Numbered from the stretch's first letter, positions 30,745 to 40,000 are shown. The stretch: DNA of 64,000 nucleotides from Dimorphilus gyrociliatus (GCA_904063045.1 CAJFCJ010000005.1:1193988-1257987); one strand, 5' to 3'. The notes: a model not told the origin generated them from the sequence alone. Program-made: numbers and translations.

Positions 30745-32353
30745 TTAATTCGTGATATTTCTTCTACCTCCTATATGCATTCCCTTTTGACTGTCACCAG
30801 CAGTGGATCCATATTGCAAGTTAACCACACCCTTACTTGCTTGATCCATGTCGGATATTTTCATATCAGCAACCCCTCTTGCAGCTCCCATGGCCATTCC
30901 ACTCTGACTCGCGCCTTTGTTAGTTCCCATCTGAAGTCCAATTACTGTCTGTCCCTCCTAATTAATTGTGAATAGTTTAATGAATGGTTAAAGAAATACG
31001 TACATTGTTTAATTAACCATTTACCTTACTCATTTCACCGACTTTACTGTCGGCAATGTGTCTACTTCCGCCGAAATTCATTCCACTTTGACTTGCTCCT
31101 TTATTTGAGCCAGCTTGCAATCCGATGACAGCCTGACCCTCTCTAGACATAGCATTAGAGGAAATATCGCCAGCATGTCTAGTCCCTCCGAAAGACATAC
31201 CAGATTGACTTGCACCCTTATTACTACCAGATTGAAGGCCAATTACTGATTGTCCTTCTCTGGACATTTCACCCGCTGAAATATCAGCCACATGTCTAGT
31301 TCCTCCAATTTTCATGCCTGATTGAGATGCTCCCTTGTTACTTCCTGCTTGTAAGCCTATAACTCCTTGGCCTTCTTTCGACATATCGTCCGCTCGAATA
31401 TCAGCCACATGCCTTGCCCCGCCTATCTTCATGCCTGCTTGAGACGCTCCTTTATTGCTACCCGCTTGTAGCCCAATAACACCTTGACCCTCCTTCGACA
31501 TGTCATCAGCTCGGATATCCGCCACGTGTCTAGCTCCTCCAATTTTCATACCGGCTTGGGAAGCACCTTTGTTAGTACCAGCCTGTAAACCAATGATAGA
31601 TTGACCAGCTCTCAGTTGCTCTTCAGTAAACTCTACGACGTGTTTTTCAGTAGGTTTCGGACCAATTGTAGCTTTAGTGAAGCCATTTCTCTGGCATTCT
31701 GTTCCCAATTGCTGAATGCAGGATAGGACTTGAGCCATATTATGACCCTCATAAAGATCGATGGTTTGGAAAAGGCTGGTATTCGACATTCCGTATTTTT
31801 CACAAAAGGATACAAATTGTTGAATATTCTCCCTTTGCTTAAATGGTGCGGCCATTGTGTTAGGCTTTAGACGCAACTTTTTAGCAGCGGGTGGTGGGTT
31901 TGGCGTGTGTTCTTGTATGAATAAAGCCAATCTGTTGTTTTAAGGAAACATTTCTCTGATAAAAGTATACTAGAAAAAATAAATCAAAGTACCCACTTCA
32001 CAAGATGAACTCCACTTCTCAACTCCTTTTCAACATTTCTCATTCCTGGTGCTATTTCAATGTCCAATAGAGTCTTAAACCACCCAATGACTTCTGCCTC
32101 CATACTTGAATCATAGCGAGCTGCTAGCTAGATATAGAAAAGGCGAAATTTACACAGAAGCCGGGAGGCTCTGCTTATCTAATTTTTACAGACTCGGCAG
32201 ATGTATCTTTTAAAACGCTTGCCCTACTTTAATTAGTTGAAAACTTTCTTTATTCAACAAGAGTTACTCAGGTTATTACACGATTTTATTTTACTTTTTG
32301 GTACTAACCTTTCCAGCAATAGCTCTTTGATCTCCTGCAAGCTCAGTTGGCAT
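30745..32353 (-). CDS. Calponin/myophilin-like protein: CH domain plus seven calponin (CLIK) repeats
   Basis: CH motifs FKQRENIQQFVSFCEKYG and LFQTIDLYEG, plus GPK. Repeats of IGLQAGxNKGASQxGM occur at a 39-aa (117-nt) period. First exon 32353-32309 encodes MPTELAGDQRAIAGK. Confidence 0.92.
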
Positions 32354-32795: not shown

Positions 32796-34957
32796 TTAAT
32801 TATGAATATGCGTGTTTACATCTTCATCATCATTCTCATCCTCGTCTATAGCCTCTTCACTACCGCTTTCAGAAGGGGTTTGATCAGTGGGGAATGAATA
32901 AATCAGTCTTTCGCACTCTCTTGTTTTCTTCATATTCATAAAAGTTTTTATCACTGTTTGGCGGTAGGCGGCGCACTGACCAAGAATATGCAAGCAGAAA
33001 ATGCCGTCCGAATCGTAAAGTTCTTGATATAGTTTTTCTTTATCCTCAATTTTTAATGAAAAATTTTCAACAGATTCTACCCAGACAGATATTAAATCAG
33101 ATCCGAATTTGCTACGGAGCTGCTTTGCTAATTTGCGTTGTTTTGTAGCATATTTTATATAAAAGGTTTCAACATTTTGTTGATTGGATAGTGTTAGATC
33201 TGCTGAATCCAGAGTACCTCTACCAGAGTCAATTGTCATACTACAAGTATCTTTGGGTAATTGAAAGTCATCTTCAAAATCCAGTGGCTCCAATACCGGT
33301 AAACCATTGACAAATAATCGAACTAATGAGATAATAACTTCGTTCTCGGAGCATACTTTGTTGAGTTGCTCTTGAACTGCACCTTGAGCCATATTCCCTA
33401 AAACCCACAGAGCCTCTCTTTGAACATTTTTCGGACCATTCAATAAATGATGTAGCACTTTAGGTATCAAATTTGCATCCAAAACTTCCTGAATTTGTTG
33501 AGGTGTGCCTGCCGTCATATTAGACACGCACCAGAGTGCCTCCCTTCTTAAATTATCTGGCACTTGGTCCGATAGTAAGTTAGAAAATTTCTCTATTAAA
33601 CCCGCATCAAGAACGTGCTGTGTTTGTTGATCTGACCCAGTAATTAGATTACCAATTGTTCGTAAAGTGGGAACAATAATCCTTGGTTGATTTCCTGGAC
33701 TTAAATATGGCAACAATATAGGTACTAGACCCATGTCAAGAATATCTTGAATGCTAGTACTGTGCAGGTCAGCAACATAGCTTAATGACCATATAGTATC
33801 CAGCATAACTTGGAAATCACTATCACCAAGAAGGAAGTAGATAACAGGTAAGAGTTTCCGAATTCTTTCTTGTGTTAATGCATCAACTGACTTGTTGCGA
33901 ACTAAATTTATGATACACCATGATAAATCTCGCTTTTCACTAAGTGTAGATGCTCTGCATATAACACCCATAAGCATTTCTATAAAGCCTTCCCGTATTA
34001 TAAAGTTTGTTATATTAGGGGATTTATCACCTGTAAAAATATCACTCATAAAAATTTTGCCAGAACTATTTCTATTAAATTTTTACCCATTAAATTTCCT
34101 AAAGTCCATATACATTGATCCCTAACATTTGATTTTGTAGACTTTTTCAGCAGCTCCAATAAAACTGGAACCGCACCTGCCTCAAATACTGCATGCGTTT
34201 GCTCTGGAGAACCAGCAGCTATATTTGTTAAAACCCATGCTGCTTCAAACTGAATTGTCCTGTATATAAAAAGAAACACCTTTAACCCGTGGAACTATAT
34301 GAAATAAACTGCACTAGAGTATATTAATACATCTCAACTATAGTGTGCTTACTATGCAGTTCTAAGAATGAATAATTATATAAGCATTTCTCACGTGTCA
34401 GAGTCGGCCAAGCAGTCAATTATTATGGGAATAGCTCCTGCATTAACGTATTTCTGTATGGGTGGCTCTATTTCGTTAGATAAATCTCGTCTGAAACAGT
34501 TGATTTTTATAATTAAACCAAGTTTTAGCACTACGTGGGTTACTTAATTACCTGATGAACATGATCGCATTGCATCTATCTTTGACGCTGGAGGCATTTT
34601 GAATAATGCGCAGTAATCTTTTTGCAGAAGTATTCTCCTCTTCGTCTTCTGAATCCTCCTCTTTAGCAGTTGATTCCTTCTCATCTTCTTCTATCGTTGG
34701 TGGTGTTTCTGCTACCTCTCTCTAAAATTAGTAGATTATAGGATGTAAAATTAAAAGCAAATATTTACCTCTTTCTCAACTTTGGTATCAACCAATAAAT
34801 GGTTGCGTCTAAAGTCGTACAATTTATTAGCGATATATGTAATAGGATCAGCTGGTCTAGCATCACAAACACCAGCAACTGCTTCAACTAATGCTTCTCC
34901 AACCTCTTCCTTTAAATATGAATTATCAACACTGTCAGTCTCAGATGCCTCGGCCAT
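32796..34957 (-). CDS. Importin-alpha-derived ARM-repeat protein with N-terminal Dpy-30-type domain and C-terminal TIR/SEFIR-like domain, 620 aa, 5 exons
   Basis: Exons 34957-34769, 34721-34552, 34490-34395, 34259-34087 and 34030-32796 are all GT-AG, in frame and total 1863 nt. Importin-alpha motifs: [42 protein letters not shown]. No IBB domain. Confidence 0.8.
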
Positions 34958-35766
34958 TCTGTAGGTTTTATAAATTTCCAATATTATTTGCGATAAAAGA
35001 TATTCAATACAGTCATTACGTTAGTGATTCATAATTGATCTTGTTTCGTCATTTAATGTTTGGAATTAATATTGTTAGATTAGACCAAACAAAGTAGAGT
35101 TTCTTATTGAATGTAATGAAACTTCTTCCAACTGTAAATATTGTCTAATTTCTTTTCCAAGGAGCAAATAACCCGGCGTTACTAATGCGGGCGGACACTT
35201 TCATTGTTTACGTTGTCAGGCTTTATAACCTTCACCTTGAAACTATGACTAATAATCAGAACGAAATCCGTATTCAACTTGATATTAGGAATTATAGAGA
35301 AACGATATAAAATCAAAAAGTCTCGATATTTAGCATATCGTGCTTGTTTTAAAACCAAAATATCTCGAATCAATAATTCGCTTTCCAAAGGCTGACATTT
35401 AAGACGATTAAGTAAACTAATTTTTCATTGATTTGAGAAAACGAAAAGTGTTCCTCAGTACATCATCCACAGTAACTGCTGTGGCGCGATTTTAATGTTG
35501 CTTGTGGATTTGCTTCCTGCCAATGTTTAATTTCTACCACAAAAATAAATATTTTTTCTGGATAATTAGAGAAAGAGAAAGAGAAAGAAGGGGGAAGTTT
35601 ATAGACTCTAAAAATATTATTTTAATTGCTATGAAGGAAACGAGAACATTAAAATCAATAGCCGCGAGATGGCGACCCTATCACCAAAAGCGTTTGAATA
35701 ATCTACATGCTTGAAGGCCGCTGAAAGGAAATAATACTGTTTAAAGAATATTAATATGTTAGAATC

Positions 35767-36348
35767 ATGACAGTTCGACATCCAACCTTAGCTTTTCCAG
35801 CCGATTTGACGGGTGTATGCGCATCATTGAACGACACTTTAGGATGTTGCAGAATTTGCAGCTGGTCTTCGAAAGATATGGACTTAATGTGCTCGTCCCC
35901 TCTTAATAGGCCCGTCAGGTGTGCTGACGAGGAGAGTGTATATCCGTCCTTTATTATTAGAATATGGTCTCGATCTTCCAGAAGATATCTAAGTGTGCTA
36001 AATCCTGGAGCATTGGTTTATGGTCGGAATCCATTTGGTGAATCCGGACAATTTCGAATCATTGTATTAAGGGAAGATATTGTCATACTACAGAGTACCG
36101 CCTGTTCAGACAACCATTTAGCTATAAGAAGTGGCCTTATTGTTGGAAATGGGGAAGGGGGAGAAGATTGTGAATGGTTCTTACGACAAAATGAGAATGG
36201 GTCTTGCTCTTTCGAAAATGTTATGTTTCCTGGATGCTTTTTGGGGGTTCGAAAAAATGGAAACGTGATTAATTTAGCGATAAATGTTGAAAAAGACTCT
36301 TTAGAAGCTAGCTTTGTTATACAGTTAGCTGCAATGGTTGTGCAGTGA
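35767..36348 (+). CDS. Leaderless beta-trefoil protein (IL-1/FGF/fascin-like superfamily), intronless, 193 aa
   Basis: Three-fold pattern IRIWSRSSRRYLSV / VILQSTACSDNHLAI / SFENVMFPGCFLGV, with GxGGxDCEW and GQF turns. No hydrophobic signal peptide. Confidence 0.6.
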   Translation: MTVRHPTLAFPADLTGVCASLNDTLGCCRICSWSSKDMDLMCSSPLNRPVRCADEESVYPSFIIRIWSRSSRRYLSVLNPGALVYGRNPFGESGQFRIIVLREDIVILQSTACSDNHLAIRSGLIVGNGEGGEDCEWFLRQNENGSCSFENVMFPGCFLGVRKNGNVINLAINVEKDSLEASFVIQLAAMVVQ

Positions 36349-37070
36349 AAAAACGTACTTTTAGTGCAGTTACTCGTACACTTCTAAAAAAAGCAACTAA
36401 TCTGCAACGCATTAAACTTAGTATATGATTTAAAAACAAATTCTTTTCGCATTCTCGGCTAATTTAGAGATTAGGCATGCTCCTATATTAGCCTACAGTA
36501 TATATTATACCAGAAGAGTATAAAACTGAATATATTGATTTTATCGTAATATCTCACAGATGGCGAGTTCAAAATACAAACTATAGATGTCAGTGTTTGC
36601 AATCACGTGCTTTTATTTTTCTACATGTTAACTTTGTGAAAACTCACTCACTATTAACTGATCTCTTTATAGGCCAAACTGTTATATTTCTTACTTTACT
36701 GATTTAAACAACTTTCGATAGATATTTCCAGTTAGTTGCTAGTCAAACTATGAAATATTAAACAAATTTTGAACAGTGTAATTTGAAAGAAAAGGAAAGA
36801 AAAATAGACTTCTTTTAGAGCCATCAATCGGAATGTATGCTCTCTGTACAGTATACTTCAGCATAATGTATTTACACCATATAAATATCGCATACGCCTA
36901 GCGGGATGTGTAGGCAATGAATATTCATTTTCTACTGCAAACTCTTTCATAGATAGGCGGAGCGCTAGCGCAACTCCGCCTACAATTGTGAATATTTACA
37001 AAAGTCTTTTTCGTCGGCAGTCAGTTTGCGGTTCTCGTCAGCGGTAGCAGTATTAAACAGAGTCGGAAAA

Positions 37071-40000
37071 ATGTCTTCAACCCAAAAGGATACAACTTTT
37101 ACAAAAATTTTTGTCGGAGGCTTGCCTTATCATACGACTGATGAAACTTTACGAGATTTCTTTATCCAATTCGGAGAAATAGAAGAGGCAGTAGTGATCA
37201 CAGAACGGTCAACTTCAAAAAGTCGCGGTTATGGTTTCGTGAGTGAAATCTATTTATTAAAAATATGCTCAGTTTTTTATAATATCAATCTTATAGGTGA
37301 CAATGGCTGATAGACTTGGCGCAGAGAGAGCTTGTAAAGACCCTAACCCGATTATCGATGGTCGAAAGGCAAATGTGAATTTAGCTTATCTAGGTGCCAA
37401 ACCTCGTGTAGTAGCAGGTATTTCTTATTAAATAATTTTATATTTTGCTATTTATCCTACAACACTGCGGTATAGTCAACGATTAGCCAATTGTGGCTTT
37501 ATGTAGGTCGGTTCTTTTGTCCGACAAATTCCTTCAATATCGTTCGCCGTCAGCTAAGCAACTACTATTTGCGATTAATGGTAAAATCAAAATATCAATA
37601 TAAACAAGTAAATAAGTTATAAAAATAAGATTACAATATTTAAATAAAAATAAATCTAAAAATTTAGTACTAATTAGTTAGCACAGGTTACGTTTATTGA
37701 ATGTCTTATAACTGCAAAAAAGAATAAGGTACTTGAATATTAGGCCAATTTGGGTGCTGTCTAGATAAAGACGCGACACACGTGTTCAACAGATTTTTGT
37801 ATAGGTAGTATATAACCGGAAACGAAGCCCCTTATGTGCAGTATAGACAATGACTGCGTCAATGATAGGGACGAGAGCGTTTGAAAAATATATTGATCAA
37901 CGTCGCGTCAATTGATTTAGCCGTCCCATTGTTATATATACTGTGTACCTACTACGTTGTCTATAATCCATGTATACAGTTATATATATATATATATATA
38001 AAGATCCAAATATAAATACTCCTATTTAAGGTAGTGTGTATGTACAAGAGAGAAATACAGGGTGTAGAGTAGTTCTTCGTCGAGTATAAGAATAGAGAGT
38101 AGATATTTCGTATTACAAAATGTACCACGTGAAATTTATTAGTCTCAGATCCTTTACAGTTAAATATTCAAATTTTTATATGTATGTAGTTCTCTCTTGT
38201 TATGTGTGACTTATCTTGGTCGTAAAACGTCGCCCTTAAGTTTTTCACGCGGTCGCTCCTTGAACGTGATTGAAAGGCGACAAAGAGTTAGGTCAATCGC
38301 ATATGTATATACCAGCTGACGAGTTTGAACACGTTCGCATACAACGCATTGAAGAAAGCATTAAAATCGCCTCGGCCTTATTATTACTTGAGGATGTTTT
38401 AATCCACACACGCCTCAACAGGTTCTCCACTCGCCCTCGCCGCCGCCGCAGCCAAGCTAAACTATCCTACTTTACACTCTCAAATTGTCGCTGGGTAAGT
38501 TTTTTAATTGAGAAATATTCTCTTCACATCAACAGTATATAAATTATCAATTTAAAACTATTATTATATTATATACAGTAGTATACGTATATGATATATA
38601 AATCAACATTGCCAGATAAAGTGTCAGGGAGGCGTCTAAAATTAGACGGTAATTTTCAGAGTGTTAGTGTGCGTGTGGCGTTTATACATATGCAGTCACA
38701 TATATTATATTTCTTTTTTTCTCTCCTGTATCAATTACGCCATCAAGTCTTCAATTTTCTTACATACTAACTAACCCCCAGTCAACCGTCTACGTTCAAA
38801 TTGCCCAAATAATCAATGCGACTATTCGTATTTTTCAATAGCTAATCCACTAAGATAATCCTTCTAATCCATCGAAGGAGAGATCGTATTGACGACGCTT
38901 TTTCTGCTGATAGAAAACATGTGCCTTCTTAGTGAGCTATTTCAGGCAGCATCTCGGTCTGTTCTAAAAATACATTCCTCGAAATCTTAGCTGGTGAAAC
39001 CTGAAACGGACCGCCAGCTCTTCTTATCGCATACTCGCCGCACCTACACAAACAATTTCGCCTTCTGCGCAGCTCACAAAATACTATATATATATATATT
39101 TTAACCTCGTATAATTTTATATACATAATAGTTTTAAATGCCTTAATCGCTCATGGATACTGTTTATTTTTCCTATAACTGGGTTCATAAGCAGTATTCA
39201 ACAAAAACAGTATTTTTCCCCAAGCAAAGTATTTTAAGCGCTAGCCGTAAAAGTGTAAGACTAAATTTAGAAGTATAACCGAAAGCGTACACCGTATATC
39301 CCCTTCACATACCTGCAACTCGATAATTTATCAGCCGCGGTTTCTCATCAAATAATCATGCACGCGCTGAAAGCTACAGTTCATTTCTTTGTCTATATAT
39401 TCATCTGTAACACCAAATAGTCTATTTTTTCGTATAATGTGTTTTAAGTGTTTTTAATTTGAACGAGAGCCTTGTAGTTTTATACATTTACATTGTACAT
39501 CTTTATATATATATATACACTTATACATAAAGTATGTATAATTGCATATGCATATCCCGTATATATATATTAATATAATATATATAAATAAATATATATA
39601 TATATATATAAATGTATTTGTATATATTTACATTTTATAACTCACTTTCCTGACATAACGAAAAATCATGACTTAAAGCGTAAAAGTTTACTTTTTACGA
39701 ATATCGTATTTTTTCAATAAAAGTAAAGTTTGAGTCAAGATATGACGGGGCAAAAAGATGCTGTAACTTTTATATACTCTACAATACTAGAATGATTTTT
39801 GCTGTGCATTGATTTCTACGTTACAAAAGCTTGATAGTGGTGAAGTGAGAAGACTACCATGAGTTTCTGACTTTCAAATTATAAGAAATTCTTATTTCTG
39901 CTCACAGTTTACCGCAATACTTCTACGCTGCGTCATCACCTTATGTTACAACGCCAGGAATTTTGTCTGTAGCGCCCCATTCGCCACTCTCGCCAACTGC

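Follow-up and report, generated by a model that had tools for sequence, protein, structure and literature searches.

The minus-strand feature at 32796-34030 of the window, the 64,000-nucleotide stretch of Dimorphilus gyrociliatus DNA that was analysed, is the last exon and 3' end of an annotated gene, DgyrCDS3371, which is a diverged importin-alpha paralogue confined to dinophilid annelids. Its product contains a Dpy-30 motif, an acidic linker, an ARM array that runs from ARM1 to the middle of ARM9, and a conserved tail of ~170 residues that is without detectable relatives. The reading that we favour, with a probability of about 0.58, is that the protein is an importin-alpha paralogue that has lost both the IBB and ARM10, carries a Dpy-30 N-terminus and a mainly helical, dinophilid-specific tail, and serves as a stationary scaffold that binds NLS peptides. 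The existing annotation of the gene assigns it no function, and a limited text search returned no paper on it.

A public protein search identified the 620-residue DgyrCDS3371 protein (referred to as P0001), which is 100% identical to the tail of the window ORF. All protein-level work used this public sequence, and the exons of the window were not joined into a separate model. The ORF that is listed at 32796-34049 on the minus strand begins with an ATG that is present by chance; the true start of the exon is position 34030, which follows an AG acceptor, and its first nucleotides complete a Gly codon that is opened in the preceding exon (the GT donor of that exon is located at 34085-34086). A 4487-nt spliced contig from a public run (contig X2) skips five segments, all of which are bounded by CT..AC on the plus strand, i.e. 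by GT..AG in the direction of DgyrCDS3371, and is colinear with the window from 34028 down to 32500, beyond the stop codon at 32796-32798. In a marine metatranscriptome, a 469-nt contig (contig X1) aligns without gaps over 33009-33477, a region that contains the ARM/tail junction, and differs from the window at 8 positions, 6 of which are synonymous. As neither contig shows a gap where it covers the last exon, this exon is uninterrupted in RNA. This bears out an earlier, sequence-only reading of the window in which the ARM repeats and the tail were proposed to be encoded by one continuous exon; the transcripts neither splice out the tail nor terminate before it. Table 1 lists the exons and the parts of the last exon.

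Table 1. Exons of DgyrCDS3371 and parts of its last exon, in window coordinates.
Feature	Coordinates	Strand	Evidence
First coding exon: start codon 34955-34957 and Dpy-30 (P0001 residues 13-50)	34769..34958	-	Pfam; spliced contig
Exon: acidic linker and start of ARM region	34552..34721	-	Spliced contig; P0001 sequence; pLDDT
Exon: ARM1	34394..34490	-	Spliced contig; ORF translation
Exon: ARM2-3, with WVLTN and WTLGN; major NLS site	34087..34258	-	Pfam Arm, E 6e-17; GT donor 34085-34086; spliced contig joint
Last exon, first part: end of ARM3 to first two helices of ARM9 (P0001 residues 211-450), with WCIIN, WCVSN and WVLGN	33309..34030	-	PDB; AlphaFold; Foldseek; dN/dS
Conserved linker (residues 451-495), predicted disordered	33174..33308	-	P0001/P0002 alignment; pLDDT 26-38; dN/dS
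Candidate TIR-like segment (residues 496-590)	32889..33173	-	Pfam TIR_2; HMM versus shuffles; end-to-end alignment; AlphaFold; dN/dS
Acidic Ser/Asp/Glu-rich C-terminal end (residues 591-620) and stop codon 32796-32798	32796..32888	-	Translation; dN/dS 0.27; pLDDT ~37

Contig X2 overshoots DgyrCDS3371 into the neighbouring genes, by ~1.4 kb upstream of 35100 and by ~0.85 kb downstream of 32500, which suggests either that transcription units are tightly packed or overlapping, or that the contig is an assembly merge. A further GT-AG intron (34959-35019) is located immediately upstream of the DgyrCDS3371 start codon. The neighbour on the downstream side (31013-32103, minus strand) is of the calponin/myophilin type and encodes a CH domain (E 6e-9) and five calponin repeats (E 1e-51); it is syntenic in locus L001, the orthologous locus described below. 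On the plus strand, positions 35767-36348 hold a divergent 193-aa ORF with a sub-threshold match to the FGF family (22.4 bits versus a cut-off of 24), and a 193-aa ORF occupies the equivalent relative position and orientation in both L001 and a further locus, L002. An RRM-domain gene (RRM_1, E 4e-14) that is interrupted by a short intron follows at 37026-37431 (plus strand).

P0001 contains an importin-alpha-type ARM superhelix that extends from ARM1 to mid-ARM9 only. Pfam Arm matches the full protein with an E of 7e-45 and the last exon with an E of 3e-22. Apart from designed ARM proteins, the top PDB sequence match is human importin alpha-3 (E 1.9e-52), and this match spans only residues 10-238 of the ORF, ending at approximately residue 413 of the 521-residue chain. 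In an AlphaFold model that was based on a 52-sequence alignment, residues 90-450 of P0001 have pLDDT values of 78-98 and the acidic linker (residues 55-83) has values below 50, and a Foldseek search with the modelled ARM array retrieved importin alpha-3 (4uae_A, E 3e-20, TM 0.82). In the 52-sequence importin-alpha alignment, the columns that hold W160/N164, W203/N207, W247/N251, W290, R333/N337, W376/N380 and W418/N422 are invariant or nearly so, such that both NLS sites, the major one (ARM2-4) and the minor one (ARM6-8), have their Trp/Asn positions intact. The sequence-only reading had placed all of its WxxxN-type motifs in the last exon; WCIIN, WCVSN and WVLGN are indeed encoded there, whereas WVLTN and WTLGN belong to the preceding exon (34087-34258). 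Overall, ARM1-8 is 31-38% identical to importin alpha-3/alpha-4 (human KPNA4/KPNA3; PDB 4uae, 5xzx), with which P0001 shares the superhelical fold and the Trp/Asn residues of both NLS sites. Between P0001 and its orthologue P0002, dN/dS is 0.064 for ARM residues 211-434.

Importin-alpha proteins combine three couplings: the IBB with importin-beta, the groove with the NLS, and ARM10 with CAS. Both ends of P0001 differ from those of importin alpha-3/alpha-4. At the N-terminus, where importin alpha-3/alpha-4 contain an IBB, P0001 instead contains a Dpy-30 motif at residues 13-50 (PF05186, 31.3 bits versus a Pfam cut-off of 22), and the full protein has no Pfam match to the IBB (PF01749) at E values up to 1. 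At the C-terminus, importin alpha-3/alpha-4 contain ARM10/Arm_3 and a CAS/Nup50-binding end, whereas in P0001 ARM9 is cut after two helices and is followed by the ~170-residue tail. Pfam finds no Arm_3 (PF16186) in the full protein, and an HMM of the importin-alpha C-terminus gives the tails of P0001 and P0002 scores that fall within the shuffled range, in agreement with the proposal that the CAS-binding C-terminus had been dropped. Most of the importin-alpha proteins that were retrieved with the whole of P0001 carry PF01749 and PF16186, and none carries Dpy-30. The orthologous locus also contains a Dpy-30 exon (L001:4996-5235). Thus, the architecture originally proposed for the gene was correct in its ARM part and missed the Dpy-30 motif that takes the place of the IBB, which alters the functional picture. 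P0001 has in common with DPY30 and the radial-spoke Dpy-30 proteins a Dpy-30 motif that scores above the Pfam threshold. In COMPASS and in ciliary radial spokes, for example, Dpy-30 domains form dimers and dock on amphipathic helices. In a limited text search, which was not a census of architectures, no paper mentioned both Dpy-30 and an ARM array of the importin-alpha type.

Transcription and purifying selection both extend to the tail. The only relative of P0001 residues 435-620 is P0002, which was recovered from Logan assemblies of two runs and is encoded by a syntenic locus (L001) that has the Dpy-30 exon upstream, shares the intron position before DKSP, and is followed downstream by a calponin-repeat ORF with a weak Pfam match. 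A word-index search with the tail and a HMMER search of 1.84 billion representative proteins with a profile of the two tails returned only P0002 and the 1151-aa P0058; the latter was rejected as a relative, as it is a translated tandem satellite repeat that matches 13 times at a QEVIKTF-like word and is a database artefact. The two tails are 70% identical in amino-acid sequence. Synonymous sites in P0001 and P0002 are saturated (dS ~1.7), and dN/dS is 0.09 for linker residues 435-495, 0.12 for residues 496-590 and 0.27 for the acidic end. Residues 451-495 of the linker form the most conserved part of the tail (79% identity) and are predicted to be disordered; they include an acidic-aromatic motif and a 13-residue stretch, both of which are identical in P0001 and P0002. 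The FEDDF core of this motif fits the FxDxF pattern for binding the AP-2 appendage, a fit that may be due to chance. With no more than two tail sequences in existence, the power of all profile and fold methods applied to them is limited.

Residues 496-590 contain the motifs from which the sequence-only reading had derived a TIR/SEFIR-like domain, at the positions given for them (32889-33173), and consist of four short hydrophobic stretches that alternate with amphipathic segments. It is conceivable, albeit rather unlikely, that this segment is a genuine TIR-like alpha/beta module that has diverged extremely and been truncated (betaA-alphaA-betaB-alphaB-betaC-alphaC-betaD), which would lack the catalytic Glu and provide an adaptor or oligomerisation surface, making the protein a fusion of an importin-alpha ARM array and a TIR. 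Positions 1-57 of the Pfam TIR_2 profile align to the P0001 tail with 13.7 bits (E 0.09), but this is less than half of the gathering score (cut-off 28), the P0002 tail has no Pfam match at E values up to 1, and Condensin2nSMC, an unrelated helical family, outscores TIR_2 in the same scan (E 0.02); SEFIR, TIR and ThsB_TIR are not among the Pfam matches at E values up to 1. Similarly, the ESM-feature clusters that are nearest to P0001 residues 490-620 are bacterial TIR, TIR_2 and ThsB_TIR (score 0.90, 117-131 of 256 features shared), whereas the clusters nearest to the P0002 tail are helical and ARM-like (V-ATPase H, ZER1-like/Arm, BAF250_C, TMCO6 and Arm_3, with 130-161 shared features). Because a ThsB-type alignment (at least 70% identity) is too narrow for a profile of TIR domains in general, a second profile was built from 15 natural bacterial TIR domains, namely TcpC of E. 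coli CFT073 and 14 plasmid homologues. The resulting HMM gives the P0001 tail 4.8 bits in the expected place (FYIKYA, helix, SVWVES), a value that is reached by 5 of 1000 shuffles, and the P0002 tail 0.2 bits in the same site, which is reached by 88 of 1000. A purpose-written end-to-end ("glocal") profile alignment, which forces the match from betaA through betaD, yields 22.0 bits for P0001 and 19.0 bits for P0002; among 1275 windows of natural E. coli proteins used as decoys, and over five gap settings, these scores rank in the top 0.3-0.6% and the top 0.5-3%, respectively. The corresponding z values are 2.8 and 2.25 against the TcpC-type profile (1.35 and -0.4 for the reversed tails), and 2.3 and 2.0 against the ThsB-type profile (0.8 and 0.7 when reversed). 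ThsB proteins that were run as a positive control scored like the tails but in alignments that looked structurally wrong, and thus provide no calibration of these values; moreover, as the TIR hypothesis was drawn from the same sequence, the p of ~0.005 is not an independent confirmation. The weak, direction-specific similarity of the tail to bacterial TIR profiles is real and reproducible, but it is sub-threshold and concentrated in the first 40 residues. Comparison of the two-tail profile with the TIR alignment by hhalign gives a probability of 0.5% over 22 columns, which is no better than for importin-alpha C-termini or ThsB, a PDB profile search at E values up to 10 returns no TIR chain and instead finds the helical CNOT1 (E 0.024) and cullin-5, and neither PADLOC (no TIR model at E values up to 10) nor NCBIfam gives anything relevant for the tails. 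We consider the matches of the tails in the Pfam, PADLOC, NCBIfam and PDB profile searches (Condensin2nSMC, CERLI1 PH, TIR_2, CNOT1, cullin-5, E1-E2 and PD-DExK) to be at noise level.

Structural considerations also argue against a TIR or SEFIR domain. The consensus TIR fold comprises five parallel beta-strands that alternate with five helices, with a Box 1 consensus of Y-D-V-F-I-S-Y and a BB loop that reads RDxxPG, or GDSL in bacterial TIRs (PMC7075850). The tail has at most four strand-like stretches, and as only the 30-residue acidic end follows them, alphaD-betaE-alphaE is impossible. Its Box 1 candidate is consensus-like in D. gyrociliatus (TFYIKYA) and reads TFYIRNS in P0002, the middle of the betaD candidate strand is occupied by a Lys, and in both species the segment after the VW stretch contains no Gly/Pro motif of the BB-loop kind. 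Compared with bacterial TcpC/TIR_2 domains (E. coli CFT073 TcpC, locus L004), the tail resembles them in its Box-1-like FYIKYA followed by an amphipathic helix, in a VW-x-E stretch corresponding to the VWYD/VWFxE motif that follows betaB, and in the spacing of the four hydrophobic stretches, which by eye equals that of TcpC to within 1-2 residues; it differs in having no GDSL/PG BB loop, no W-x-x-E-L catalytic helix and no alphaD-betaE-alphaE, and in statistical terms the similarity is marginal, and less pronounced in P0002. The catalytic E-L position of the profile falls in a gap of the P0001 alignment and in a deletion run of the P0002 alignment, and neither protein has a Glu at the catalytic position, as had been anticipated when no obvious NADase Glu was seen. 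SARM1, whose ARM region is not of the importin-alpha type, has a TIR that passes family thresholds and keeps its catalytic Glu, and its SAM domains mediate assembly. The likeness of P0001 to SARM1, an ARM-repeat region coupled to a TIR-type module, exists only on the TIR hypothesis, and P0001 contrasts with it in having no SAM domains (no Pfam match), no catalytic Glu and no above-threshold TIR match. AlphaFold, which the sequence-only reading had named among the checks on its proposal, gave low-confidence helices and no beta-sheet in two runs (tail alone, pLDDT 41.7; tail within the full protein, 26-58, with 42-58 for residues 496-590), and the ESM Atlas model, likewise without a beta-sheet, has no structural neighbours that resemble a TIR (TM 0.43 or less). 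With pLDDT below 60, the confidence of the models is too low to rule out a beta-sheet, yet they lend it no support. Every standard test of a TIR/SEFIR domain thus falls below threshold, leaving the idea unproven rather than refuted, and no finding speaks for the role in sensing NLS-bearing cargo and signalling that the sequence-only reading had attached to it. We regard it as quite improbable that dinophilids evolved or captured a minimal TIR-like fold, four-stranded and non-catalytic, that comprises residues 496-590 and became fused to an NLS groove and a Dpy-30 dimeriser. The tail could also be a degenerate ARM9-10, which a MAFFT alignment suggests by eye, with a 12-residue stretch placed opposite the last ARM10 helix (IYKLAYEIIDQYF). 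This idea has no statistical support: hhalign against importin-alpha C-termini gives a probability of 0.2%, and reversed tails come close to the forward ones in the end-to-end alignment (z 2.4 and 1.7 versus 2.8 and 1.4), so that the match reflects generic amphipathic-helix character, and descent from ARM9-10 is neither demonstrated nor refuted. Finally, the tail may be a largely disordered regulatory region without an autonomous domain. Its short linear motifs, namely the acidic-aromatic DFEDDF stretch (invariant), a KxRK helix of basic character and the Ser/Asp/Glu-rich end, would then fold onto the NLS groove or recruit partners. The pLDDT values of 26-45 over residues 458-508 and 550-620, the low-complexity acidic composition from residue 591 onwards and the fact that conservation within the tail peaks in the linker predicted to be disordered are consistent with such a region; however, residues 496-590 contain several long hydrophobic stretches (e.g. 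IFCLHIL) that are unusual for disorder and evolve under constraint, and low pLDDT is in any case expected with a two-sequence alignment. We consider a largely disordered tail to be a doubtful explanation.

Our preferred reading of DgyrCDS3371 as a stationary, NLS-binding scaffold builds on the couplings that the protein has kept and lost. By comparison with importin-alpha, the ARM groove is predicted to still bind basic NLS-like peptides. With the IBB missing, there would be neither hand-over of cargo to importin-beta nor auto-inhibition, and with ARM10 missing, there would be no recycling or export by CAS; as a result of both losses, the groove would hold NLS-like peptides without shuttling. 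The protein is probably dimerised or docked through its Dpy-30 motif, and may tether or sequester NLS-bearing proteins. We infer its NLS binding, dimerisation and localisation from these features. The most likely identity of the tail is that of a mainly helical element specific to this lineage, either remodelled from ARM9-10 or new, that could present a partner-binding or regulatory surface, and its acidic-aromatic stretch, basic KxRK helix and acidic end may bind partners or fold onto the groove.

The gene is limited to one small annelid family. If the tail were TIR-like, which is a minority possibility, the protein would link NLS recognition to TIR-type signalling, a connection that has not been described previously, and the four-stranded version of this idea, if true, would define a new kind of cytosolic receptor in which recognition of NLS proteins leads to TIR-type assembly. 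On the scaffold reading, of the three couplings of importin-alpha DgyrCDS3371 keeps only that of the groove, yet it is expressed and under purifying selection. It would then be a natural case of an NLS-binding module that has found another use beyond the transport cycle, apparently as a scaffold docked through Dpy-30, and could reveal non-transport functions of importin-alpha in a form that is separated from transport.
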